From Scyliorhinus canicula (taxonomy: Eukaryota), in the NCBI RefSeq assembly GCF_902713615.1, contig NC_052157.1, positions 58,354,325-58,418,324 of the forward strand: a stretch of DNA of 64,000 nucleotides. Reading direction: 5' to 3'. Position numbers and translations under genes: made by a program. Shown one piece after another: positions 9,581 to 64,000 of the stretch. Position 1 is the stretch's first letter; every line of letters starts with the position of its first letter. The notes under the pieces were generated by a model. The model was not told the DNA's origin and searched no databases. It saw only the letters and a list, made by a program, of their open reading frames with translations.

Positions 9581-10229
9581 GTCACCTCTCCTGTGGCCAC
9601 CCCCCACGCCGTGACCAACCTCCACGCTGTACGGTGTCAACCATCAGCACTGGTTGATGCCGTTACATAGGTGTTTTGATTTATGCCGACGTGACCCGTG
9701 GTCGCATCGGCGGGACTTCGCCCCATCCGGCTGAGAGAATACGGGCAGCCCCAGGGTCCGTAGTGTCGCGCCGGCCCCCGCCATTCTCCGAGGCGTGCGG
9801 CGCGATTGACGCCTCACCGACTTTTCAGCGTTTGGAGACTTGGGGAGACGGCGGGGGCAGGATTCACGCCGGCCCCCGGCGATTCTCCGACCTGGCCCAG
9901 CGTGGGGGGGGGGGTCGGAGAATCCCGCCCCTGATTACAGAGTTCAGTGATCTCACATTTCTGTTCATTGCTATTCAACCATGTTGGCTGCACACAGTGA
10001 GACAATATGTTGGTTATGATGTGTCCACACAGCAGGACTGGGGATCACCAGGGATCAGGAATCAGGAATAGTTTCAGCTTGCTGAGGAGGAGAAGGAGAA
10101 TCTCTGGTTCCAGGTTCCTCTCCGTACATTAAGAAGCAGCGTGCCAATGTTTCATTGCCCTCTGTCTGCTAATGATACCCTGCTTGTAAATTGCTGATGG
10201 AAACAATAAGCTTTTCAGAAACAGACGGA

Positions 10230-10545
10230 CAGTATTAAAACAGGGAGGTTATGCTGAACATTTACAAAGCTCTGGTTAGGTCACAGCTAGAGTATTGTGT
10301 TCAGTTCTGGTCACCACACATTAGGAAGGATGTGAGGATCCTCGAGAGGGGGCAGAGGAAGATTTACCAGAGTGGTTCCAGGGATGAGGGGTTAGACAGA
10401 TTGTTAATCAGTAATGGGTTGAATGGTTATGGAGAATGGGTAGGATGGTGGAGTTGAGGCTATGATAAGCCACGATCGTATTGAACGGTGGAGCAGGCTT
10501 GAGAGGTTAAATTGGCTTCTCCTACTCCTTGTTTTTAAGTTCTTA
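10230..10545 (+). mobile_element. CR1 LINE 3' fragment
   Basis: YKALVRSQLEYCVQFWSPH motif and CR1-type 3' tail. Confidence 0.8.
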
Positions 10546-10597
10546 TGTTCGAAGAAAGAATTACTCTGTCTCATTCCACCTTCCAGCTCTTGGTCTA

Positions 10598-13196
10598 TGA
10601 TGGAACCATCAACTTAACGACCACCATCTCTCTCCAGGGACTATTGCTGGCCTCTATAATCCCCTCACTGAGAAGCCTTCAGACCTCTGATCTAACAAAT
10701 ACCCTATCCTGCAGGCTGTACCGCCTGCGACGAGTGGCTACAGGTTTACAGTCCTTTGTGAGATTGGCGAAGAGAGGAGGGGGGAAGATTCGCAGCGTAG
10801 CGAGGCTGCAGATAGTGAGTGGGGGCAGGGGCCCGCCGAAGCTGAGGGTGAGGCTCTTAAGGTTCACTGAAAATCTAGACCTAATGAGAGTGGCGTGCAG
10901 AGGCCGGGCAAAATGTAGAATTGAAATTTTGCATAGCTAGCGCCTCGGATTGTGAGTGTTGCGGCGGTGCGCCCCGGATCTGGACAGAATGGGAGCCTGA
11001 AGCGAGCTAGATAGTTTGCCGCACGGGGAAAACGGGGAGCGAACAGCATCTTACCAGGTCTGGGTGTATGAAGCTCTCAGTGATCCCAGAGTCGAAAAGA
11101 GGGTTGGAATATAAAAGCAGCGATGTGCTACTGAGCCTTTATAAGGCTCTGGTTAGGCCCCATTTGGAGTACTGTGTCCAGTTTTGGGCCCCACATCTCA
11201 GGAAGGACATACTGGCACTGGAGCGTGTCCAGCGGAGATTCACACGGATGATCCCTGGAATGGCGGGTCTAGCATATGAGGAACGGCTGGCGTTCCTGGG
11301 ATTGTATTCATTGGAGTTCAGAAGGTTAAGGGGAGATCTAATAGAAACTTACAAGATAATACATGGCTTAGAAAGGATGGACGCAAAGAAACTGTTTCCG
11401 TTAGGCGAGGAGTCGAGGACCCGTGGGCACAGCCTTAGAATTAGAGGGGGTAAATTCAAAACAGAAATGCGGAGACATTTCTTCAGCCAGAGAGTGGTGG
11501 GCCTGTGGAATTCATTGCCGCAGAGTGCAGTGGAGGCCGGGACGCTAAATGGCTTCAAGGCAGAGATAGATAAATTCTTGATGTCGCGAGGAATTAAGGG
11601 CTATGGGGAGAATGCTGGGAGGTGGAGTTGAAATGCCCATCAGCCATGATTGAATGGCGGAGTGGACTCGATGGGCCGAATGGCCTTACTTCCACTCCTA
11701 TGTCTTATGGTCTTATGGAAAAGGCATGGCATGTTGTACCCGTTGATTTGGACCTCTGCCATCGAATTTCGCAGATGCTTCGGGCGCGATTGGTCCAGGA
11801 TGACTGCGCCGAGTTGCGGGCCACGTGACGAACGCCCGGGGAGGTTGTACTCTTCCGATGAGTTGTCCGAGCGTGGAGATGCAGGTCGGGCCCGTGGATC
11901 GCACGTAGCGGGCGGCGAGGAAGATGGTGTCCAAGATGGCGGCCCCCATGAGTCGCACGTGGCCGGCCGCGTGGTGGAGGTTTGCCAAGATGGCGGCCCC
12001 CATGGCTCGCACGTGGCGGGAAGGAGCAGGGTCGGGGCATAGGCCACAGTGTTTCGGGCCCCGTGGGGAGCGATTACTTCGTGCCGCTGGGGAGTTGGAA
12101 GCTGGGGCCCTTTTTGCGAGGCACACTCTCGCGTAATGGCCTTTCCGCCCGCAGCTGCTGCAGGTCGCGTTGTGGGCCGGGCAGTGCTGCCGCGGGTGCT
12201 GATGCTGGCCGCAGAAATGGCAGGCTGGAGCAGCATAGCGGCTGGCTGGAGCAGCATGGTGGCTGGGCGGCCGCGTGGCACAGGCCTGGGGGAGTCGCTG
12301 GTCGGGGGCCCATGATTGAGTCACGGGGTCCGCGGGGAACGAGGTGAGGCTGCGGAAGGAGACCCCCATTGTGGTAGCAATTTCCGCAGTTGTTTCTAAT
12401 CTTGGGCCCCCTTTTCCAGCAGTCATTGGCACACATAATTAGACCTGAGGCTCGCTACAAAAACATCGCGTACAGCAAGTTCTCTATGTTCAGCCGCGGT
12501 AACCGCTTGATAGTTACAGTCATTTGATAGATTATTGAGCTCTCTTAAAAATTCGGCGAGTGATTCTGTAAGCCGCTGGCGGCGCGTCGTGAACACATGG
12601 CGTGCGTAAACTTCGTTAATGGGCCTTACATACATCTTATCGAGTATCGCTAGCGCTGCAGTATATGAACCGGCTGAGTTTAGTTGCGTAGAGCTTCTGT
12701 GGCTCACCCTCGCGTGCAGTGGACTTAACTTCTGTTCCTCTGTTGTTTCGGCTGTGCTCGCTTCTGCCAGGTAGGCCTTAAAGCACCGCAGCCAGTGGGA
12801 GAAGATTTCTTTTGCCTCTGCATCCTGTGGGTCGAGTTCCAGGCGTCCAGGCTTGAGGGCTGTTTCCATGATCGATCCTGATTGTTCTTAAGTAGATTAA
12901 ATTGATGGAACCATCAATTCACTAGACACGTGCTTTAAGATATGAACAGTGGTTTTAATCTACTTACAACAGAGCCAGCCTGTTACCCGTCGAACTCTCG
13001 ATGAACTGCAGGATGGCTCTGGACAAGGGTATTGATACAGTAGTCCAGGGGGAGGAGTCATGGGCGGAGCCAAGGGTGGAGCCCTGTACAAACTCCTGAG
13101 CATTCCCAGAGCTACACCCCCTAGTGGTCGGATAACGGATGCGCTTACAATGGTATTGGTAAATACAGTGTGAATTACTAAGTTACATTCACCACA
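10598..13196 (-). mobile_element. Internally deleted Gypsy LTR retrotransposon (gag, protease, RT start)
   Basis: 5' LTR 13196-12903; gag (LKPGRLELDPQ) with CCHC knuckles; protease LFDSG; RT start SPWREMVVVK then only the last 14 bp of the 3' LTR. 5-bp TSD GTCTA at 10593-10597 and 13197-13201. Confidence 0.9.
11100..11718 (+). mobile_element. 5'-truncated CR1 LINE inserted in the Gypsy protease
   Basis: LYKALVRPHLEYCVQFWAP...LWNSLPQ; tail TCTTATGG repeats; GAAAAG duplicated at both flanks. Confidence 0.9.
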
Positions 13197-16295: not shown

Positions 16296-16435
16296 TTAAA
16301 CAGACTGAGGACTTCCTTGAACTGTTCGTCTCTCCCAGACACAAATCCCAGCGACAGTGATAACGACAACCACAATGAATATCACAGCTCGTATTCCCAG
16401 GATCAGGATCACGTCCAGATTCTCTCCTCCACTGT
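16296..16435 (-). CDS. Terminal transmembrane exon with intramembrane Arg and short tail (activating-receptor type); candidate last exon of Siglec-like gene B
   Basis: Acceptor TGTGTTTTTCAG, phase 1; encodes (Y)SGGENLDVILILGIRAVIFIVVVVITVAGICVWERRTVQGSPQSV*. Not in the ORF track because it lacks an ATG. Confidence 0.75.
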
Positions 16436-27795: not shown

Positions 27796-28223
27796 TATTG
27801 CGGAGGGCCTGGTATTCAACAGGACAAAGCACAATCCAACAGGCAGTGGTAGTGAGAAGTGACTGAGGAGGATTCTGGATGAAGTAAGCTTGCTCACCAC
27901 AACTGAGAAGGGATTGCGGAAGACCCAGTGTCAAATACATTTAGATTAGGAGAATGAGCAGGTTGCATATTACCTCAAAAATATGAATCTAAGTGGAGAA
28001 GAGGAACAACATGATCTGGTGAAACAAGTACACAAATCACTAAAATTAGTGATACAGCTGAACAAGGTGATTAAACAAACAAAACAAACACTCGCAATTA
28101 TTTCAAGAGTGAAATAATCAAAAGTAACAGCCAAGCCAGCGGAGACCACCTCCTTTGAATGAATAAAAGAAAATGTTGAAGAAGACTTCTGGAGAACCTG
28201 CCATGTCCTGAGCCAAGCATCAC

Positions 28224-28493
28224 CTTAAATGTGTCATTTAATCCTATTCTGAAATAATAAGGTCCTGCATCTTTCTGTGTGATATTGGTTATAGTCAGCG
28301 AGCAGTCACCATCTTTCAGGCTTCCAGACAGCCGGGCCCGATGGCGGAAACATGGCACGTCGTGATTGTGATCCTCGGAGTGAAAGGCTGCAGTTGACGT
28401 GTCTCCTTTCTTGTTATTACACCAGACTCCAACTTGAGATTGGTTTCGCGTATTTGATGGACTACTGCAATTACATGGAATCTGTACACACAT
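28224..28493 (-). pseudogene. Truncated V-set exon of a third Siglec-like paralog (C)
   Basis: CVQIPC...FRHRARLSGSLKDGDCSLTITNITQKDAGPYYFRIG; the N-terminus and acceptor are replaced by minisatellite and the final strand is missing. Confidence 0.85.
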
Positions 28494-29745
28494 CTGAGGG
28501 AGTGCTGGACTGTCAGAGTGTCAGTACTGAGGGAGTGCTATACTATCAGACGGTTAGTACTCAGGGTGTGCTGCACTGTCAGAGGGTCAGTACTGAGGGA
28601 GTGCTATACTGTCAGAGGGTTAGTACTCAGGGAGTGCTGCACTGTCAGAGTGTCAATACTGAGGGAGTGCTGCACTATCGGAGGGTCAGTACTGAGGGAG
28701 TGCTGCACTATCGGAGGGTCAGTACGGAGGGAGTGCTGCACTGCTAGCTGGTCAGTACTGAGGGAGTGCTGCACTGTGAGAGGGTCAGTACTGAGGGAGT
28801 GCTGTACTCTCAGAGGGTCAGTACTGAGGGAGTGCTGCACTGTCAGAGAGTCAGTACTGAGGGAGTACTGCACTGTCAGAGGGTCAGTACTGAGGGAGTG
28901 CTGCACTGTCAGAGTGTCAATACTGAGGGAGTGCTGCACTGTCAGAGGGTTAGCATTGAGGGAGTGCTGCACTTTCAGAGGGTCTGCATTGAGGTAGTGC
29001 TGCACTGTCAGAGGGTGAGTACTGAGGGAGTGCTGCACTGTCAGAGGGTCAGTAATGAGGGAGTGCTGCACTGTCAGAGTGTCAATACTGAGGGAGTGCT
29101 GCACTATCAGAGGGTCAGTACTGAGGGAGTGCTGCACTATCAGAGGGTTAGCATTGAGGGAGTGCTGCACTGTCAGAGGGTCAGCATTAAGGTGGTGCTG
29201 CACTGTCAGAGGGTCAGTACTGAGGGAGTGCTGCACTGTTAGCTGGTCAGTACTGTGGGAGTATTGCATTGTTGGAAGGTTAGTATTGAGAGAGTGCTGC
29301 CCAATTGCAGGTTCTGCACAGAGTGAGTGCTGGACTGTCGGAATGTCAAGACTTAATGACTGCTGCATTGTTGAAGTGTCAGTACTGAGGGAGCATTGCA
29401 CTGCCAGAGGGTCAGTATTGAAGGAGTATGTCACTCTCAGAGGGTCAATATTGAGGGAGTGCTGCACTGCCGGTCGGTCAGAACTAAGGGATTTCTACGC
29501 TCTGGATGGGTGAGTACTGAGGTAGTGCTGCACTGTCGGAGGGCAAGTACTGAGGGAGCACTGCACTCTCAGATGATCAGTGCTGCGAGGGTACTGCACT
29601 GTTGGTGAGTCAGTGCTGTGGGAGTGCTGCACTGTCGGAGGGCAAGTATTGAGGGAGCGCTGCACTGTCAGATGATCAGTGCTGCGAGAGTACTGCACTG
29701 TTGGTGAGTCAGTGCTGTGGGAGTGTTGAACTGTTGGAGGGTCCT
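28494..29745. repeat. 33-bp minisatellite (CAGTACTGAGGGAGTGCTGCACTGTCAGAGGGT), copy 1
   Basis: Same unit as 58540-61270, in the intron after the first C2 exon; degenerates to the right. Confidence 0.92.
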
Positions 29746-30241: not shown

Positions 30242-30535
30242 ATTGCACAGTGAGTATGAGGGTCCGCTCCGATGAAACAGATGGATATCTCAGTCTACAG
30301 GTGAGAGTTTGTCCGTGGTGTCTGAGTGATGGGATCAGGGTCAGAACAGAAGTATAGGTCAGAGTGACGCCATGCTGAGTTACTGTATTTGAGACTGATC
30401 CAGGTACGTCAGTGGGAGTGTCCCAGGTTAAGGCAGGTGCTGTTCCGTTGCATGTTGTGTTGAAGGTGCAGCTTATGTCCACACGCTTTCCTGCAATAAT
30501 TTCAGCCAGGAATATCCTGGGTTTATCTGTGAAAT
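30242..30535 (-). CDS. Siglec-like gene B, C2-set Ig exon
   Basis: 294 bp, AG/GT, phase 1-1; DFTDKPRI...ISCTFNTTCNGTAPALTW...GQTLTCRL...LTVQ; extra Cys for the interdomain bond. Confidence 0.9.
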
Positions 30536-31280: not shown

Positions 31281-31649
31281 CAGAAACATGAAGCCGTGTT
31301 GCAGGATAATAGCTATAGCCGAGACCGCTGTCAAATTCTATCCTGAAAAAATAAGGTCCCGTATCTTCCCGCCTGATGTTGTTTATTATCAGGGAACAGT
31401 CTCCGTCTTTCAGGTCTCCAGACAGCCGGGTCCGATGACGGAATTTTGGTGACTCATGATTGTGATCCTTGGAGTGGAAGGCTAGGGGAGCCCAGGGAAT
31501 CTCTTCCTCAGTATTAAACCAGAGTGCACCTCGCGGTTGAGTTGCTAAATGTGACGGATAGCTGTAATGACATGGAATCTTCACACATGAACCTTCCTGC
31601 GCTGTCACCTCTCGTGGAGTGTCACCTTTCCACTCTTGTGACAGTCCAA
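31281..31649 (-). CDS. Siglec-like gene B, sialic-acid-binding V-set exon
   Basis: 369 bp, AG/GT, phase 1-1; GSCVKIPC, GDCSL, YFFRIE (essential Arg, no F-strand Cys), the Siglec V-set signature. Confidence 0.92.
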
Positions 31650-43006: not shown

Positions 43007-43046
43007 CTTGAAGAAGTGACATGAGGAAGTAAGATTTCCCGATCAT
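43007..43046 (-). CDS. Siglec-like gene B leader (signal peptide) exon
   Basis: ATG at 43046: MIGKSYFLMSLLQ+G|GTAATA, phase 1, joins V exon to give ...LLQVGLSQEWKG; acceptor CTGCAG just upstream. Confidence 0.75.
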
Positions 43047-49500: not shown

Positions 49501-52500
49501 TTCCCAAGCATAACTTCTCAAGCATACTTGTCACATATGCCCCAGCATCCAATCCCTCGCTGCCCTCCGGGAGGCCAAAGATCCTCAAGTTCTGCCTCTG
49601 GGACCTATTGTCCAGGTGCTCCAATTTCTCCTGCAGCCTTTTCTGGGGGTCCCTCATCATAAGAACATAAGAACTAGGAGCAGGAGTAGGCCATCTGGCC
49701 CCTCCAGCCTGCTCCGCCATTCAATTAGATCATGGCTGATCTTTTGTGGACTCACCTCCACTTTCCGGCCCGAACACCATAACCCTTAATCCCTTTATTC
49801 TTCAAAAAACTATCTATCTTTACCTTAAAAACATGTAATGAAGGAGCCTCAACTGCTTCACTGGGCAAGGAATTCCATAGATTCACAACCCTTTGGGTGA
49901 AGAAGTTCCTCCTAAACTCAGTTCTAAATCTACTTCCCCTTATTTTGAGGCTATGCCCCCTAGTTCTGCTGTCACCCGCCAGTGGAAACAACCTGCCCGC
50001 ATCTATCCTATCTATTCCCTTCATAATTTTAAATGTTTCTATAAGATCCCCCCTCATCCTTCTAAATTCCAACGAGTACAGTCCCAGTCTACTCAACCTC
50101 TCCTCATAATCCAACCCCTTCAGCTCTGGGATTAACCTAGTGAATCTCCTCTGCACACCCTCCAGCGCCAGTACATCCTTTCTCAAGTAAGGAGACCAAA
50201 ACTGAACACAATACTCCAGGTGTGGCCGCACTAACACCTTATACAATTGCAACATAACCTCCCTAGTCTTAAACTCCATCCCTCTAGCAATGAAGGACAA
50301 AATTCCATTTGCCTTCTTAATCACCTGTTGCACTTGTAAACCAACCTTCTGTGACTCATGCACTAGCACACCCAAGTCTCTCTGAACAGCGGCATGCTTT
50401 AATATTTATCGTTTAAATTATAATCCCGTTTGCTGTTATTCCTACCAAAATGGATAACCTCACATTTGTCAACATTGTATTCCATCTGCCAGACCCGAGC
50501 CCATTCACTTAACCTATCCAAATCCCTCTGCAGACTTCCAGTATCCTCTGCACTTTTCGCTTTACCACTCATCTTAGTGTCATCTGCAAACTTGGACACA
50601 TTGCCCTTGGTCCCCAACTCCAAATCATCAATGTAAATTGTGAACAATTGTGGGCCCAACACGGATCCCTGAGGGACACCACTAGCCACTGATTGCCAAC
50701 CAGAGAAACACCCATTTATCCCAACTCTTTGCTTTCTATTAATTAACCAATCCTCTATCCATGCTACTACTTTACCCTTAATGCCATGCATCTTTATCTT
50801 ATGCAGCAACCTTTTGTGTGGCACTTTGTCAAAGGCTTTCTGGAAATCCAGATATACCACATCCATCGGCTCCCCGTTATCTACTGCACTGGTAATGTCC
50901 TCAAAAAATTCCACTAAATTAGTTAGGCATGACCTGCCTTTTACGAACCCATGCTGCGTCTGCCCAATGGGACAATTTCTATCCAGATGCCTCGCAATTT
51001 CTTCCTTGATGATAGATTCCAGCATCTTCCCTATTACCGAAGTTAAACTCACTGGCCTATAATTTCCTGCTTTCTGCCTACCTCCTTTTTTAAACAGTGG
51101 CGTCACGTTTGCTAATTTCCAATCCACCGGGACCACCCCAGAGTCTAGTGAATTTCGGTAAATTATCACTAGTGCATCTGCAATTTCCCTAGCCATCTCT
51201 TTTAGCACTCTGGGATGCATTCCATCAGGGCCAGGAGACTTGTCTACCTTTAGCCCCATTAGCTTTCCCATCACTCCCTCCTTAGTGATAACAATCCTCT
51301 CAAGGTCCTCACCTGTCATAGCTTCATTTCTATCAGTCGCTGGCATGTTATTTGTGTCTTCCACTGTGAAGACCGACCCAAAAAACCTGTTCAGTTCCTC
51401 AGCCATTTCCTCATTTCCCATTATTAAAACTCCCTTCTCATCCTCTAAAGGACTGATATTTACCTTAGCCACTCTTTTTTGTCTTATATATTTGTAAAAA
51501 CTTTTACTGTCTGTTTTTATATTCTGAGCAAGTTTACTTTCATACTCTATCTTACTCTTCTTTATAGCTTTTTTAGTAGCTTTCTGTTGCCCCCTAAAGA
51601 TTTCCCAGTCCTCTAATCTCCCAGCAATCTTTGCCACTTTATATGCTTTTTCCTTCAATTTGATACTCTCCCTTATTTCCTTAGATATCCACGGTCGATT
51701 TTCCCTCTTTCTTCCGTCCTTCCTTTTTGTTGGTATAAACCTTTGCTGAGCACTGTGAAAAATCGCTTGGAAGGTTCTCCACTGTTCCTCAACTGTTCCA
51801 CCATAAAGTCTTAGCTCCCAGTCTACCTTAGCTAGTTCTTCTCTCATCCCCTTGTAATCTCCTTTGTTTAAACACAAAACACTAGTATTTGATTTTACTT
51901 TCTCACCCTCCATCTGTATTTTAAATTCCACCATATTGTGATCGCTCCTTCCGAGAGGATCCCTAACTATGAGATCATGAATCAATCCTGTCTCATTACA
52001 CAGGACAAGATCTAGGACCACTTGTTCCCTCGTAGGTTCCATTACATACTGTTCTAGGAAACTATCGCGGATACATTCTATAAACTCCTCCTCACGGTTG
52101 CCTTGACCGACCTGGTTAAACCAATCGACATGTAGATTAAAATCCCGCATGATAACTGCTGTACCATTTCTACATGCATCAGTTATTTCTTTGTTTATTG
52201 CCTGCCCCACCATCTCGTTACTATTTGGTGGCCGATAGACTACTCCTATCAGTGACTTTTTCGCCTTACTATTCCTGATTTCCACCCAAATGGATTCAAC
52301 CTTATCCTCCATAGCACCGATGTCATCCCTTACTATTGCCCGGATGTCATCCTTAAATAACAGAGCAACACCACCTCCCTTACCATCCACTCTGTCCTTC
52401 CGAATAGTTTGATACCCTCGGATATTTAACTCCCAGTCGTGACCATCCTTTAACCATGTTTCAGTAATGGCCACTAAATCATAGTCATTTACGATGATTT

Positions 52501-52900
52501 GTGCCACCAACTCATTTACTTTATTCCGAATACTACGAGCATTCAGGTAAAGTACACTTATGTTGGTTTTTTTTAACACCTCCGCCTCCGCCTCCAGCAC
52601 GGTTACCTGGTCCTCGTGCTCGGCCACCTTCTCCTCCGCCTTTTGGATCACCAGTCCGTGGGCTTCAGAACCCTGTTCCACCCGGTCAATCGAGACATGG
52701 ACCAGAAGTGGTCTTATAAGAAGAAATAGCCGAGCAAAGAAGGCGCGTGCCAAACCTACAGCACAGGAAACCATGGCAGAGGTGTAGGATCCTGGCTTGG
52801 TGGCCCAGTGGTCAACAGTACAGTTGGTTAAATTCATTCAGGAGAGCTTCGCCAAGCAAAAGAAGGAATGTTTAGACCCGATCAAGGCACACGTTTATTA
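46580..52900 (-). mobile_element. L1/Tx1-clade LINE, degenerate, ORF1 split by a CR1
   Basis: ORF1 LDNRSQRQNLRIFGLPEG; endonuclease LITWNIRGLN..ETQL; GKALGPDGY; C-terminal LSLIQFKVVHR. Confidence 0.85.
49661..52576 (-). mobile_element. Young CR1 LINE with essentially complete ORF2 (APE endonuclease + RT), one frameshift
   Basis: LYLNARSIRNK, GDYKG, GVPQGSVLGP, FADDTK; 1-bp deletion near 50405; ORF resumes 50375-49752. Confidence 0.95.
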
Positions 52901-53932: not shown

Positions 53933-54101
53933 TCAGTTTCTCTGGAATCTGATCTCTGCGTATTCCATGACCTCGCTCCTGTGGACAGTCCTGTCACCAT
54001 TGGGCCCCTTTGAGAAGTTGATTGTGGCGTAGGGAAGGTTATCGGGTTTGTCGGTGTGCCCTTGCGAGTGAAAGCAGCTGCAGCGACTCTCGTCCCAGGT
54101 A
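53933..54101 (-). CDS. Siglec-like gene A terminal cytoplasmic exon with two tyrosine motifs
   Basis: Acceptor CTTCTCCTCCAG, phase 2; TWDESRCSCFHSQGHTDKPDNLPYATINFSKGPNGDRTVHRSEVMEYAEIRFQRN*; AATAAA about 50 nt after the stop. Confidence 0.85.
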
Positions 54102-57219: not shown

Positions 57220-57316
57220 TTTCTCACATACACGAAGATTAACATTCCAGCCAGGAAACAACTCAAGATGATCCCAGCCGTGATCAATCCTACTGTCCAG
57301 TTTTTAGAGTCTCTAC
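57220..57316 (-). CDS. Siglec-like gene A transmembrane exon (uncharged)
   Basis: TTTTTACAG / GTAAGT; (R)RDSKNWTVGLITAGIILSCFLAGMLIFVYVR(N); phase 1 in, phase 2 out, matching both neighbours. Confidence 0.88.
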
Positions 57317-58127: not shown

Positions 58128-58409
58128 GTTCCACAATGATGGTTATGGACCCCTCCACTGCTCCATGTTCATTCTCTGCTGCACACTCATAGTCTCCAGT
58201 GTCCCTGGATGTAACGTGAGGAATCACCAACCACAGCTCATTGTTGGAACTTGTTCTGTTCATTGTGACATTGAGATGTCCCCACGTCAGGTTAGAAGCT
58301 GGGAAGCTCGCGACAGAGCAGATTATCACTGCAGAGTCACCCTCAATTATATTGATGGATGAAGTGTAAATCATATCAAAAGAATTCATTGATAGATTCT
58401 GTGGTGCAT
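58128..58409 (-). CDS. Siglec-like gene A second C2/I-set Ig exon
   Basis: 282 bp, phase 1-1; YAPQNLS...IICSVASFPASNLTW...DTGDYECAAENEHG. Confidence 0.9.
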
Positions 58410-58539: not shown

Positions 58540-61270
58540 GTTCAGTACTGAGAGAGTGCAACACTGCTGGAAGGTCAGTATTGCAGGAGTGCTATCCTAT
58601 CAGAGGGTCAGTACTGAGCGAGCGCAGCACTGTCAGAGGATCAGTACTCAAGGAGTGCTATCCTATCAGAGGGTCAGTACTGAGCGAGCGCTGCACTGTC
58701 AGAGGATCAGTACTCAAGGAGTGCTGCAGTGTCAGAGGGTCAGTACTGAGGGAGCGCCGCACTGTCAGAGGGTCAGTACTGAGGGAATGCTGCAGTGTCA
58801 GAGGGTCAGTTCTAAGGGAGTGCTGCACTGTCAGAGAGTCAGTACTGGGGAAGTGCTGCAGTGTCAGAGGGTCAGTACTGAGGTGGTGCTGCATTGTCAG
58901 AGAAGAGTCAGTACTGAGGGAGCGCTGCATTGTCAGAGAGTTAGTACTGAAGGAGGGCTGCACTGTCAGAGAGTCAGTACTGAGGAAGTGCTGCAATGTC
59001 AAAGGATCTGTACTGAGGGAGTGTTGCACTGTCAGAGGGTCAGTACTGAGGGACTGCTGCACAGTCAAAGTCAGTACTGAGGAAGTGCTGCATTGTCAGA
59101 GAGTCAGTACTGAGGGAGGGCTGCAATGTCAGAGAGTCAGTACTGAGGGAGGGCTGCAATGTCAAAGGACCTGTACTGAGGGGAGGCTGCACTGTTGAAG
59201 GGTCAGTACTGAGCAACTGCTGAACTATCACAGGGTCAGTACTGAAGGAGCGCTGCGATGTTGGAGCGTTAGTACTGAGGGATTGCTGCACTGTCGGAGG
59301 ATCAGAACTCAGGGAGTACTGCACTGACAGAGGGTCAGTACTGAGGGAGTGCTGCACTGTCAGAGGGTCAGTACTGAAGGAGCGCTGCACTGTCAGAGGG
59401 TCAGTACTGAGGGAAGAAGCACTGTCAGAGGGTCAGAACTGAAGGAGCGCTGCACTGTCAGAGGGACAGTACTGAGGGAGTCCTGCACTGTCAGAGGGTC
59501 AGTACGGAAGGAGCGCTGCCCTGTCAGAGGGTCAGTACTGAGGGAGTGCTCCACTATTGGAGGGTCAGTACTAAGGGAGTGCTGCACTGTCAGAGAGTCA
59601 GTACTGAGGGAGTGCTGCACTGACAGAGGGTCAGTACTGAGGGAGTGCTGCACTGTCAGAGGGTCAGTACAGAGAGTGTGCTGCAAATTCGAAGGGTCAG
59701 TATTGAGGGAGTTCTTCACTGTCAGAGGGTCAGTACTGAGGGAGTGCTGCACTGTCAGAGGGTCAGTACTGAAGGAGTGCCGCACTGTCAGAGAGTCAGT
59801 ACTGAGGGAGTGCTGCACTGTCAGAGGGTCAGTACTGAGGGAGTGCTGCACTGTCAGAGGGTCAGTCCAGAGAGTGTGCTGCAAATTCGAAGGGTCAGTA
59901 CGGAGGGAGTTCTTCACTGTCAGATGGTCAGTACTGAGGGAGTGCTGCACTGTCAGAGGGTCAGTACTAAGGGAGTGCTGCAATGTCAAAGGATCTGTAC
60001 TGAGGGAGTGCTGCACTGTCAGAGGGTCAGTACTGAGGGACTGCTGCACAGTCAGAGTCAGTACTGAGGAAGTGCTGCATTGTCAGAGAGTCAGTACTGA
60101 GGGAGGGCTGCAATGTCAAAGGTCCTGTACTGAGGGGATGCTGCACTGTTGAAGGGTCAGTACTGAGCAACTGCTGAACTATCACAGGGTCAGTACTGAA
60201 GGAGCGCTGCAATGTTGGAGCGTTAGTACTGATAGATTGCTGCACTGTCGGAGGATCAGAACTCAGGGAGTACTGCACTGACAGAGGGTCAGTACTGAGG
60301 GAGTGCTGCACTGTCAGAGGGTCAGTACTGAAAGAGCGCTGCACTGTCAGAGGGTCAGTACTGAGGGAGTGATGCACTGTCAGAGGGTCAGAACTGAAGG
60401 AGCGCTGCACTGTCAGAGGGACAGTACTGAGGGAGTCCTGCACTGTCAGAGGGTCAGTACTGAAGGAGCGCTGCCCTGTCAGAGGGTCAGTGCTGAGTGA
60501 GTGCTCCACTATTGGAGGGTCAGTACTGAGGGAGTGCTGCACTGACAGAGGGTCAGTACTGAGGGTGTGCTGCACTGTCAGAGGGTCAGTACTGAGGGAG
60601 TGCTGCACTGTCAGAGGGTCAGTACAGAGTGTGTGCTGCAAATTCGAAGGGTCAGTATTGAGGGAGTTCTTCACTGTCAGAGGGTCAGTACTGAGGGACT
60701 GCTGCACAGTCAGAGTCAGTACTGAGGAAGTGCCGCACTGTCAGAGAGTCAGTACTGAGGGAGTGCTGCACTGTCAGAGGGTCAGTACTGAGGGAGTGCT
60801 GCACTGTCAGAGGGTCAGTCCAGAGAGTGTGCTGCAAATTCGAAGGGTCAGTACGGAGGGAGTTCTTCACTGTCAGATGGTCAGTACTGAGGGAGTGCTG
60901 CACTGTCAGAGGGTCCGTACTGAGGGAGTGCTGCACTGTCAGAGAGTCAGTACAGAGTGTGTGCTGCAAATTCGAAGGGTCAGTATTGAGGGAGTTCTTC
61001 ACTGTCAGAGGGTCAGTACTGAGGGAGTGCTGCACTGTCAGAGGGTCAGTACTGAAGGAGTGCCGCACTGTCAGAGAGTCAGTACTGAGGGAGTGCTGCA
61101 CTGTCAGAGGGTCAGTACTGAGGGAGTGCTGCACTGTCAGAGGGTCAGTCCAGAGAGTGTGCTGCAAATTTGAAGGGTCAGTACGGAGGGAGTTCTTCAC
61201 TGTCAGATGGTCAGTACTGAGCGAGTGCTGCACTGTCAGAGGGTCAGTGCTGAGGGAGTGTTGGACTGAC
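58540..61270. repeat. 33-bp minisatellite, copy 2, with higher-order duplications
   Basis: Same unit as 28494-29745; variant block GTGTGCTGCAAATTCGAAGG recurs six times; about 59060-59640 is repeated at about 60050-60560. Confidence 0.95.
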
Positions 61271-61493
61271 GGATGTGCATTCTTTCAAATGAAATATGAA
61301 ACCTTGAATACTGTGCCGTCTCAGGTGGATATAATTCATCCTAAGACATGATTTAATGGAGGGCTCACACTTGACACGATTGATAACTGAAGGCAGTTGT
61401 CCCAGTTCAAACCACTGTGCTGTTTGCAGGATTCTTGCTGTGAAAAATGGAAACTATTACACCTGATATAGAATGAAAGATACCCATACTTAC

Positions 61494-61787
61494 ATTGCAC
61501 AGTGAGTATGAGGGTCCGCTCCGGTGAAACAGATGGATCTCTCAGTCTACAGGTGAGAGTTTGTCCGTGGTGTCTGAGTGATGGGGTCAGGCTGAGAACA
61601 GAAGTATAGGTCAGAGTGACGCCATGCTGAGTTACTGTGTTTGAGACTGATCCAGGTACGTCAGTGGGAGTGTCCCAGGTTAAGACAGGTGCTGTTCCGT
61701 TGCACGTTGTGTTGAAGATGCAGTTTATGTCCACACGCTTTCCTGCAATAATTTCAGCAGGGACTATCCTGGGATTATCTGTGAAGT
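61494..61787 (-). CDS. Siglec-like gene A first C2-set Ig exon
   Basis: 294 bp, phase 1-1, close paralog of 30242-30535, open frame. Confidence 0.9.
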
Positions 61788-62755
61788 CTAACACAGAGAG
61801 AATGGATCCTTTTAGATAAATATAATGTGACCATTAGTTCAAATAGAAATGACAGTCCCACAAGAGAAAGCCTTTTTACAAGGATGATATCGGAATAGAA
61901 AGATTACAATGATCATTGAAGAATTTCCTATTTTTAGACTTGATGAAGCTCTGTCACTCAGCTGAATGCACTTTCACTCAGTGACCTTTGATTTGACCAC
62001 ACTGGGTGAGGGCGGATAAACAGCTCACAGCTCGGGGAGAACAGGTTCATCACTTTGTCCAAAATCTTCCAAAGTTAAATTGAAACCTGACCCCAGCAGG
62101 ACAGGAACAATTTGAAACCATCTCCAAAACAGCAGCTTAAACAGAATAAGAGTTCTCTTGAACCGGAATTATCAACTCTGTTTCTCTCCACACAGACGCT
62201 GACAGACCTGCTGAGGTTTTCCAGAATTTTCTGGGGGGTTTTCAGATCTCCGACATCTGCAGTGTTTTGCTTTCACTGGAATCAGGTGATCAGGTTATTG
62301 ATCACATTGCTGTTTGTGGGATCTTGCTGTGCATCAACTAGTCACAAATCAATCCAGTCGGAAATCAGAAGGTATTTATTTACCAGAGTGTTCCGAATGA
62401 ACATTCAGGAATTATTTCACTGTCTGTGAATCGATTTGGGATGTCCTGAGAAAGGTGCTGCAGAAATTTGATTCTTTTGTCGATATGTAAGACTTTTAAA
62501 CAGGATTAGAGAGATCGATAAGAGTGCATAATCCGATAACATTGATATGGACTCTCAATACATTTAATTATTGATATTAAAGAGAGTATTAAAGGTTGCT
62601 TTAGGACTGAAGTGGAAATATCATCAGGTTATTGATAATCAGACACTGTGTTATAATAAGCTGTGTTTTGTATTAATGTGTAAATGTCACAGTTTGTGTT
62701 ATTTCCCATTGAGTGTTGGATGTGAATTGTTGAGTAATTATAATACAGCACTTAC

Positions 62756-63533
62756 CAGAAACATGAAGCCGTGTTGCAGGATAATAGTTATGGCCGAGAC
62801 CACTGTCAAATTCTATCCTGAAAAAATAAGGTCCCGTATCTTCCCGCCTGATGTTGTTTATTATCAGGGAACAGTCTCCGTCTTTCAGGTCTCCAGACAG
62901 CCGGGTCCGATGGCGGAACCGTGGCAATTCGTGTTTGTGATCCTTGGAGTGGAAGGCTAGGGGCGCCCAGGGATTCACTTCCTCAATATTAAACCAGACT
63001 ATTCTTCGCGGTTGGTTTTTCAGACACAATGGATAACTGCAATGACTTGGAATCTTCACACACGAACCTTCCTGCGCTGTTACCTCTCGTAGAGTTTGGC
63101 CTTTCCACCAGAAACGGCCCTAGGGTTGCTGGCACCCCGGGCAAGCTGAACTTCGGCGCCCTTCGGTTGGGGGGGGGGGCTCCGTTCACCGAGGGAAGGG
63201 GGGGGGCGCCGGAGTGACCTGGTACATGATCGGGACCCACCGATCGGCGGGCCGGTCTTTCTGTCGGCAGGCCTCCTTTCTTCCACCGGCGTGCCTGGAT
63301 CCATCCGCCATGTTTGTGCGGGGCGGCCTGGGGGAGGGCGGCCACCGCGCATGCGCTGGTTGGTACCGGCCCAACTGCGCATGCGCGGGACCCGAGTCTT
63401 TTACGCGGCGCCGGGTCTCTGACGCCGGTCACACACTCCTTGATGGCGCCCCCTAGCACATGGCGCCCCGGGCGACTGCCCGAGTTGCCGGTACCTTGAG
63501 CCGGCCCTGCTTTCCACTCTTGTGACAGTTCAG
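62756..63533 (-). pseudogene. Siglec-like gene A V-set exon interrupted by a hAT MITE
   Basis: Removing 409 bp (insert + one TSD) restores a 369-bp exon with GDCSL and YFFRIE; leader exon lies beyond the window. Confidence 0.9.
63109..63509. mobile_element. Non-autonomous hAT-type element, 401 bp
   Basis: 8-bp TSD CTTTCCAC (63101-63108 and 63510-63517); imperfect TIRs CAGAAACGGCCC / GAGCCGGCCCTG. Confidence 0.88.
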
Positions 63534-63699
63534 CTGGAGAAAAAGATATCAATATTTACCACTGGGTGGCTTGTAGGCCCACGAGACTCAAAATGTATCT
63601 GAATTAGGGAGAAAGTCAATACTGAGGAAGACTGTGATCGCTGACTTTGGCAGGAAAAATAAAAAAGCTGAATATTATTTATTCTTTTATTTTAAAAGA

Positions 63700-64000
63700 A
63701 GAGGGACTACAGAATGTGGTGTAAAGGGATCTGAGTGTCTTTGTACATGAATTACAAAATGTTAGTATTCGTCTAGAGCAAGTGATTGGGAAGGTAAATG
63801 GAATGTAGGCCTTTATTGAAAGGGGGATGGAGTATAAAAGCAGGGAAATCTTGCTGCACCTGCACAGGGTGTTGGTGAGTTAACATTGAGAGTACTGAGT
63901 ACAGTTCTGGTCTGCATGCTTAAGGAGGGATATTCTTCCATCAGAAACTGTGAATGTTCACTATGCTGATTTCTGTGGCTGGTGGGTTATCTTATGGGGA
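63700..64000 (+). mobile_element. Old CR1 fragment
   Basis: Degenerate RDLSVFVH...GMEYKSREILLHL...VQFWS. Confidence 0.7.

Follow-up and report, generated by a model that had tools for sequence, protein, structure and literature searches.

Two Siglec genes, an inhibitory one (gene A) and its activating neighbour (gene B), lie in the stretch of Scyliorhinus canicula DNA analysed here, the 64,000 nucleotides of which (the window) hold no runs of N. Their features are collected in Table 1. Pfam recognised C2-set_2 and I-set domains in the constant exons of gene A, and its transmembrane (TM) segment reads GLITAGIILSCFLAGMLIFVYV. When C2-1, C2-2, the TM exon and the tail were spliced and translated, the product was identical to residues 136-415 of XP_038669858.1 (P0210), which is named 'sialic acid-binding Ig-like lectin 13' (Siglec-13) of Scyliorhinus canicula in GCA_902713615.2. 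This exact match to a RefSeq protein shows that the downstream exons of gene A are intact, and the uncharged TM segment, together with the LPYATI/MEYAEI tail, assigns the gene to the inhibitory type; on both points the first-pass annotation was right. Gene A carries the sequence features of a CD33-type inhibitory Siglec, that is, a V-set domain, the essential arginine, C2-set domains, an uncharged TM segment and an ITIM accompanied by an ITIM-like motif. It is a Siglec by its automatic NCBI name, and binding of sialic acid is predicted.

Table 1. Features of genes A and B and of the inserted element (window coordinates)
Feature	Position	Strand	Remarks
Gene A, V-set exon V2, interrupted by the MITE	62756..63533	-	YFFRIE motif; Pfam; 84% amino acid identity to gene B V
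Gene A, first in-frame stop (TAA)	62989..62991	-	+409 nt frameshift; ORF 62989..63552
MITE, non-autonomous, hAT-type	63109..63509	.	401 bp; CAG...CTG ends, imperfect TIRs
TSD copy 1	63101..63108	CTTTCCAC on +, GTGGAAAG on -	Repeat listing; fits nTnnnnAn
TSD copy 2	63510..63517		8/8 identical to copy 1; repeat listing
Gene A, C2-set exon 1 (C2-1)	61494..61787	-	294 nt, phase 1-1; residues 136-233 of XP_038669858.1 exactly
Gene A, C2/I-set exon 2 (C2-2)	58128..58409	-	282 nt, phase 1-1; protein match; several RNA-type runs
Gene A, TM exon	57220..57316	-	No charged residue; inhibitory type; protein match
Gene A, last coding exon	53933..54101	-	Coding 54101..53936, stop 53935-53933; ITIM LPYATI, ITIM-like MEYAEI
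Gene B, leader	43046..43008	-	Sole leader in window
Gene B, V exon	31649..31281	-	Paralogue of V2
Gene B, empty site, single GTGGAAAG	31626..31633	-	In gene B V exon 31649..31281; alignment
Gene B, C2-1	~30533..30243	-	
Gene B, Arg-bearing TM exon	16433..16320	-	Activating neighbour

Gene B corresponds to XP_038669859/61/62, 'Siglec-14'. Its V exon is 84% identical to V2 in amino acids, and the stretch from V2 through C2-1 is 87% identical in nucleotides between the two genes, introns included; upstream of the V exon the homology stops at a repeat (63575-63938). A 33-bp minisatellite of 82.8 copies fills the intron between C2-1 and C2-2 of gene A (58542-61268) and a related array follows C2-1 of gene B (28494-29743), hence the duplication that made the two genes included the array. 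Between them, on the minus strand, lies an intact-looking LINE-type ORF of 812 aa (50399-52837). In RefSeq the gene of XP_038669859.1 spans 73,235 bp, of which the window shows 26.7 kb, and this span fits an alternative exon some 30 kb before the window start.

The V-set exon upstream of C2-1 in gene A, V2, is interrupted by an insertion. The exon is delimited by an acceptor, ctccag|CT at 63534/63533, and a donor, CTG|gtaagt at 62756/62755, which corrects the exon end to 62756. It is 369 nt long, the insert bringing it to 778 nt, is symmetric (phase 1-1) as had been noted before, scores 38.9 bits as V-set and 33.3 bits as Ig_CD22 in Pfam, and retains the essential-arginine motif GPYFFRIEF. The inserted element enters after 24 exon nucleotides, i.e. 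8 codons, and is flanked by direct repeats of CTTTCCAC lying 409 nt apart start to start. Eight-nucleotide repeats are frequent here (twelve families are listed within 801 nt), so that the target site duplication (TSD) taken alone is weak evidence. The V exon of gene B, which aligns base for base with gene A on either flank of the element, reads CACAAGAGTGGAAAGGTGAC, in which GTGGAAAG stands once, at the very place where gene A carries it on both sides of the 401 bp. With its target unduplicated in the paralogue, the insertion bears the mark of a clean transposition, and a mis-join is excluded. The earlier description of a 401-bp hAT MITE with a perfect 8-bp TSD, placed 8 codons into a V exon and adding 409 nt, is borne out in full by the 8/8 TSD, the CAG/CTG ends and the paralogous empty site. 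That mis-assembly put the element where it is can be given practically no credence: among the rows listed for the same-species DNA run X1 no contig spans a junction, but a perfect 8-bp duplication of a target that is single in the paralogue, together with complete termini, is what transposition, and not mis-joining, leaves behind, and among the joints listed in four runs there was no empty gene-A contig, the sole 'empty' joint belonging to another gene.

On the plus strand the element starts with CAGAAACGG and ends with CCGGCCCTG. Its 5' terminus is CAGAAACGGCC... and its 3' terminus ...GGCCGGCCCTG, the reverse complement of the latter being CAGGGCCGGC...; past the common CAG the ends pair as an imperfect inverted repeat over ~55 nt at ~70%. 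With T as its second letter and A as its seventh the TSD reads as nTnnnnAn, although as one site this is weak by itself; nTnnnnAn is the target preference of the hAT transposase Hermes (PMC10368747). Of the features of a hAT MITE we found the 8-bp TSD, the nTnnnnAn target, a (C/T)AG-type TIR start, and a short, noncoding and multi-copy body. Judged by its sequence, the element is a genuine non-autonomous insertion of hAT type, having passed every such check that could be made. No Rfam family was found over 62000-64000, which argues that it is not a tRNA/SINE-type RNA element, and Pfam returned no family for the frame that runs open through it. Its GC content is 0.70 as compared to 0.41 in the flanks, with a CpG observed/expected ratio of 0.86 against 0.45. 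The element resembles a CpG island, and one frame is open across all 401 bp. The palindrome GCGCATGCGC, which we take to approximate an NRF1 site, occurs in it twice (63347-63356 and 63377-63386, 30 bp apart). A MITE family with thousands of GC-rich copies could seed promoters or CpG islands.

The 64-kb window contains no further copy of the element or of its ends, nor an autonomous partner to which these ends would correspond. In run X1, however, the summed contig depth on the element is 19,000-50,000 against ~8 on the unique flanks, with thousands of contigs, and many family copies in these same-species DNA contigs are at least 95% alike, which together show that the family is very abundant and includes young copies. 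The copy in the window departs from the family majority at a minimum of 2 positions (63259 and 63292). Contigs of a related species (organism B, run X17) reach high copy in the core alone (63211-63392), with depths of 10,000-12,000 against 2-10 in the terminal bins, whereas the termini are the deepest part in catshark contigs. An expansion in the catshark lineage of the family with these ends is suggested, and the family looks composite or lineage-specific. Two other repeats were noticed beside V2. The intron between V2 and C2-1 contains a second very high-copy repeat (62119-62391), with depths in the thousands in both species, which is probably a SINE-like element, judged from its loose ends ...AAACAGATTATCTGGTCA and CAAATTGGCTGC...; and the repeat just upstream of the V2 acceptor (63575-63938) reaches a depth of up to 20,912 in organism B versus 280-690 in catshark.

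The 409 nt gained by insertion shift the reading frame of V2. The first-pass annotation had spoken of a frameshift with an early stop; the frameshift stands and the stop is premature, but it does not fall near the insertion: the incoming frame meets no stop within the element, and the first one comes 181 codons into V2. It had also allowed that splicing out the insert might restore the frame. We scanned for cryptic splice sites with home-made matrices based on textbook frequencies; in this crude scan no donor/acceptor pair would excise the insert in such a way that the frame is regained and the B-strand half of the V fold preserved, and the candidates around the element were all far weaker than the natural V2 donor. 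With its frame shifted and stopped V2 can, on the evidence of the reading frame, no longer supply a domain.

The exon that was hit is nevertheless not the one that RefSeq uses as the ligand-binding exon of gene A. XP_038669858.1 joins the same constant exons to an upstream V domain (V1), which together with the leader MIGKSYFFLTLLQ makes up residues 1-135 and is encoded nowhere in the window; the sole leader found within it is that of gene B, and there was none for gene A. V1 is 58-60% identical to V2 and has both the essential arginine motif and the Siglec-type IPC cysteine. The model is a Gnomon prediction, and V1 and the leader are known here from the protein model alone. It spans 26,597 bp, and given that the last coding exon ends at 53933 the gene would start ~16-17 kb beyond the window end; no other gene is listed inside this range or up to 10 kb from its ends, nor does the annotation treat the locus as a pseudogene. 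The annotated mRNA reads leader-V1-[V2 skipped]-C2-1-C2-2-TM-tail. Since it skips V2 and keeps V1, skipping V2 yields a V-C2-C2-TM-ITIM receptor and not a ligand-blind one.

To this annotation we added contig data for 61300-64000 (2,701 letters) from four runs of short Logan contigs, in which the RNA status of X11 and X14 is presumed. These data are weak, though consistent with the annotation: contig depth is a poor measure, and close paralogues fall on the conserved 3' half of V2. X11 contains contigs which match C2-1 of gene A exactly, at depths of 296 and 516, and at 61774 some 1100 of 1225 in depth carries the Asn codon of gene A, where the paralogues have Lys. A C2-1 contig of X11 runs past 61785 into ATCAGAAA, and its coding strand, ...TTTCTG|AT, reads as a V-exon end (HVS/HIS) followed by Asp; the letters visible from the upstream exon are 8, and do not tell V1 from V2. 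Since ...TTTCTG is unlike the leader end (as in gene B 43046..43008), this contig does not show a V-less form. At 62835 letters of the reference V2 type account for ~7 of 2842 in depth, at 62795-62797 there is no cover, two bins of the MITE core have depth 0, and intron contigs of gene A have depths of 6-8. V2-specific letters at intron depth indicate that V2 behaves as an intron in X11. C2-2 is carried by several RNA-type runs from different studies, and in X14 a low-depth (6.7) junction of V (...HVS) to C2-1 was seen, which could stem from gene A V2 or from gene B. The first-pass annotation had suggested looking for reads from the leader to 61787, and had taken V skipping to produce a ligand-blind C2-C2-TM-ITIM receptor; what precedes C2-1 in X11 is a V-type end, and the annotated product retains a V domain. 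Likewise its proposal of a null allele does not agree with a RefSeq protein in which the constant exons are kept with another V, nor with the abundance of the C2 exons in RNA-type runs. Gene A is probably neither null nor ligand-blind.

One joint in X14, from 63084 to 63510 at a depth of 262 (3 in X1), skips the MITE with 16 other letters. It was rejected as an intact gene-A allele, as 9 of the 16 letters differ and it encodes EWKGEIQQLV of P0004, another Siglec gene. P0004 is XP_038670873.1, a catshark Siglec with three V domains, and upstream this same X14 contig runs into the end of another V exon, the junction ...YHPVTQLQVS|AELSQEWKGEIQQLV matching P0004. Tandem V domains, V-to-V splicing and V skipping are therefore real in catshark Siglec mRNA, beyond annotation.

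It may be asked in what state the insertion found V2. Once the insert is taken out V2 reads open throughout; no further stop or frameshift occurs in it, its acceptor and strong donor are intact, and against the gene B V exon it shows a dN/dS of 0.40 at a dS of 0.24. As no other lesion is present, the splice sites are intact and dN/dS is 0.40, the MITE is most likely the event that inactivated V2. Among 12 homologues, however, only V2 has the invariant IPC cysteine changed to Ser and an invariant Pro changed to Leu, its V-set score is the lowest of the set (38.9 bits as compared to 45-61), and in a relative-rate test with the S. torazame V domain as outgroup it shows 12 lineage-specific changes against 6 for gene B, an excess that is not significant (p ~0.16-0.24). 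V2 may thus have been impaired before the insertion, given the lost Cys and Pro. At this place V2 reads IPSHC (63041-63052, minus strand) where the conserved form is IPCHY, TGT having become AGT while the Tyr two residues on has become Cys (TAC to TGC), and it appears that the inter-domain cysteine was moved by two positions and not merely lost.

Next to the reference, X1 differs in gene A at 61786, 62797 and 62837, and probably represents another haplotype or animal. At 61786 the reference has G (GAC), and A (GAT) is found in all X1 contigs at this position as well as in the gene-A-type contigs of X11 and X14. Both codons specify Asp, and the site is probably a common synonymous SNP with the rarer allele in the reference. 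Among the joints listed for X1 (DNA), X11 and X14 there was no empty gene-A site, the contigs being short and rare variants being dropped from them. For organism B the contigs match the intron at ~93% identity, and none of its joints crosses the insertion site.

The explanation which we favour, with moderate confidence, is that the MITE broke a spare V exon, and that the mRNA of gene A skips V2 and joins the upstream V1 to C2-1, giving a normal inhibitory receptor. A hAT-type MITE from a very abundant catshark family inserted into V2 by cut and paste, duplicating 8 bp; the 409 nt added cause a frameshift and a stop within V2, and with these the loss of the V2 domain. V2 would be omitted from the mature mRNA, which its 1-1 phase would permit, and the intact V1 upstream of the window would be spliced directly to C2-1 at 61787 to give V-C2-C2-TM-ITIM. 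V2 would once have been in use, be it as a further head in tandem or as one spliced in alternatively, and V1 would provide ligand binding today. Against this it may be held that V2 was the only V exon of gene A and that Gnomon chained a foreign leader and V1, a remnant or part of a neighbour, to its constant exons; the gene would then be a functional null, its transcripts with V2 and the MITE being degraded by NMD or persisting as rare read-through chimeras. Gene B, the nearest relative across V2 to C2-1, speaks for such a view in having a leader, a single V and a first intron of 11.4 kb which contains nothing like V1, by analogy with which gene A would own a leader upstream of V2; the cluster moreover carries deletion scars and V relics (28490..28176), and V1 is no nearer the V of the inhibitory paralogue P0202 (67%) than it is to other V domains. 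We consider it unlikely, since gene-A-specific C2-1 and C2-2 are abundant in RNA-type runs, which is unexpected for an NMD target, a V-type exon end precedes C2-1 and V2-specific sequence stays at intron level, and no second gene is listed within the 26.6-kb range or up to 10 kb from it.

The account given in the first-pass annotation goes further, in that the sole ligand-binding exon would be lost, leaving either a null or, by skipping, a ligand-blind leader-C2-C2-TM-ITIM receptor. A symmetric V2 with a broken frame and intact exons downstream agrees with it, and so does human CD33, which makes a V-less isoform by skipping of exon 2 (PMC9954446, PMC6712934); but the annotated product includes a V domain, and the ...TTTCTG before C2-1 in X11 is a V-exon end and not a leader, which leaves this account very improbable. 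A last possibility concerns only the role of the MITE, which would be a neutral passenger if V2 was already a dead or unused spare exon, for instance after loss of the IPC cysteine. The replacements C to S at IPC and P to L, seen in V2 alone of the 12 homologues, its lowest V-set score and its lineage-specific changes, 12 as compared with 6 for gene B, point in this direction. They are opposed by the lack of any stop or frameshift besides the insert, by the intact acceptor and strong donor, the retained essential Arg motif and the dN/dS of 0.40 against gene B; the rate excess is not significant, and the Cys gained two residues further along (SHC) could make up for the one lost. We rate a passenger role as rather improbable, and retain the reading in which the MITE disabled a V exon that gene A could spare.

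A clean transposon in a binding exon resembles a knockout, yet gene A has another head and is still annotated and expressed. V2 offers a dated, single-lesion case of V-exon death in shark Siglec arrays. V2 being a close twin of the head of the activating neighbour, a receptor pair may have been uncoupled when it was lost. A bolder version, which we put forward only tentatively, is a head swap forced by the MITE, in which the two receptors first formed a matched pair, V2, the near-twin of the activating head, was lost, inhibition now runs via the unrelated V1 (60% identical), and the pair was uncoupled in one step. If this is true and the insertion is segregating, there would be matched and unmatched catshark haplotypes, and a transposon would have created at this locus a parallel to the human Siglec-5/14 polymorphism, in a lineage separated from ours by more than 400 million years. 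The insertion also offers population studies of a model shark an easy marker, scored as present or absent. In kind the finding is real but ordinary, a V exon killed by a MITE and skipped in a multi-V shark Siglec gene; exonic MITE insertions and exon skipping are both well known. A search of the literature on shark Siglecs and on hAT MITEs of the catshark returned nothing specific.

When compared with known elements, the catshark MITE shares with hAT MITEs of the Ac/hobo/Hermes type the 8-bp TSD, the nTnnnnAn target, the CAG/CTG ends, short imperfect TIRs, a length of ~400 bp, a noncoding body and very many copies. It differs from them in its poor TIRs (~70% over 55 nt), in being unusually GC- and CpG-rich with two GCGCATGCGC palindromes, and in that in a related species its core is high-copy and its ends are not. 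In human CD33 a SNP modulates splicing of exon 2, the product of skipping being D2-CD33 without the V domain (PMC9954446, PMC6712934). Gene A is an inhibitory Siglec of CD33 type as well, and its annotated mRNA likewise omits a symmetric V-set exon; unlike in CD33, the exon is destroyed by a transposon, and the annotated product still has another V. The human SIGLEC14 null and SIGLEC16P are gene fusions or small deletions which remove the receptor and are segregating (PMC4042635, PMC6288428). Gene A is similar to these in carrying a discrete lesion in a cluster of inhibitory and activating Siglecs, V2 being closest to the V of the activating neighbour (84% aa), and dissimilar in that one of two V exons is lost and the gene is still annotated as coding. 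A likeness in organisation is found within the species itself, in the three-V XP_038670873.1, where similarly several V exons of phase 1-1 feed one constant region and some are skipped or used in tandem. Among the multi-V Siglecs of the catshark, gene A is distinguished by a dead V exon with a clean and identifiable MITE lesion and no other.
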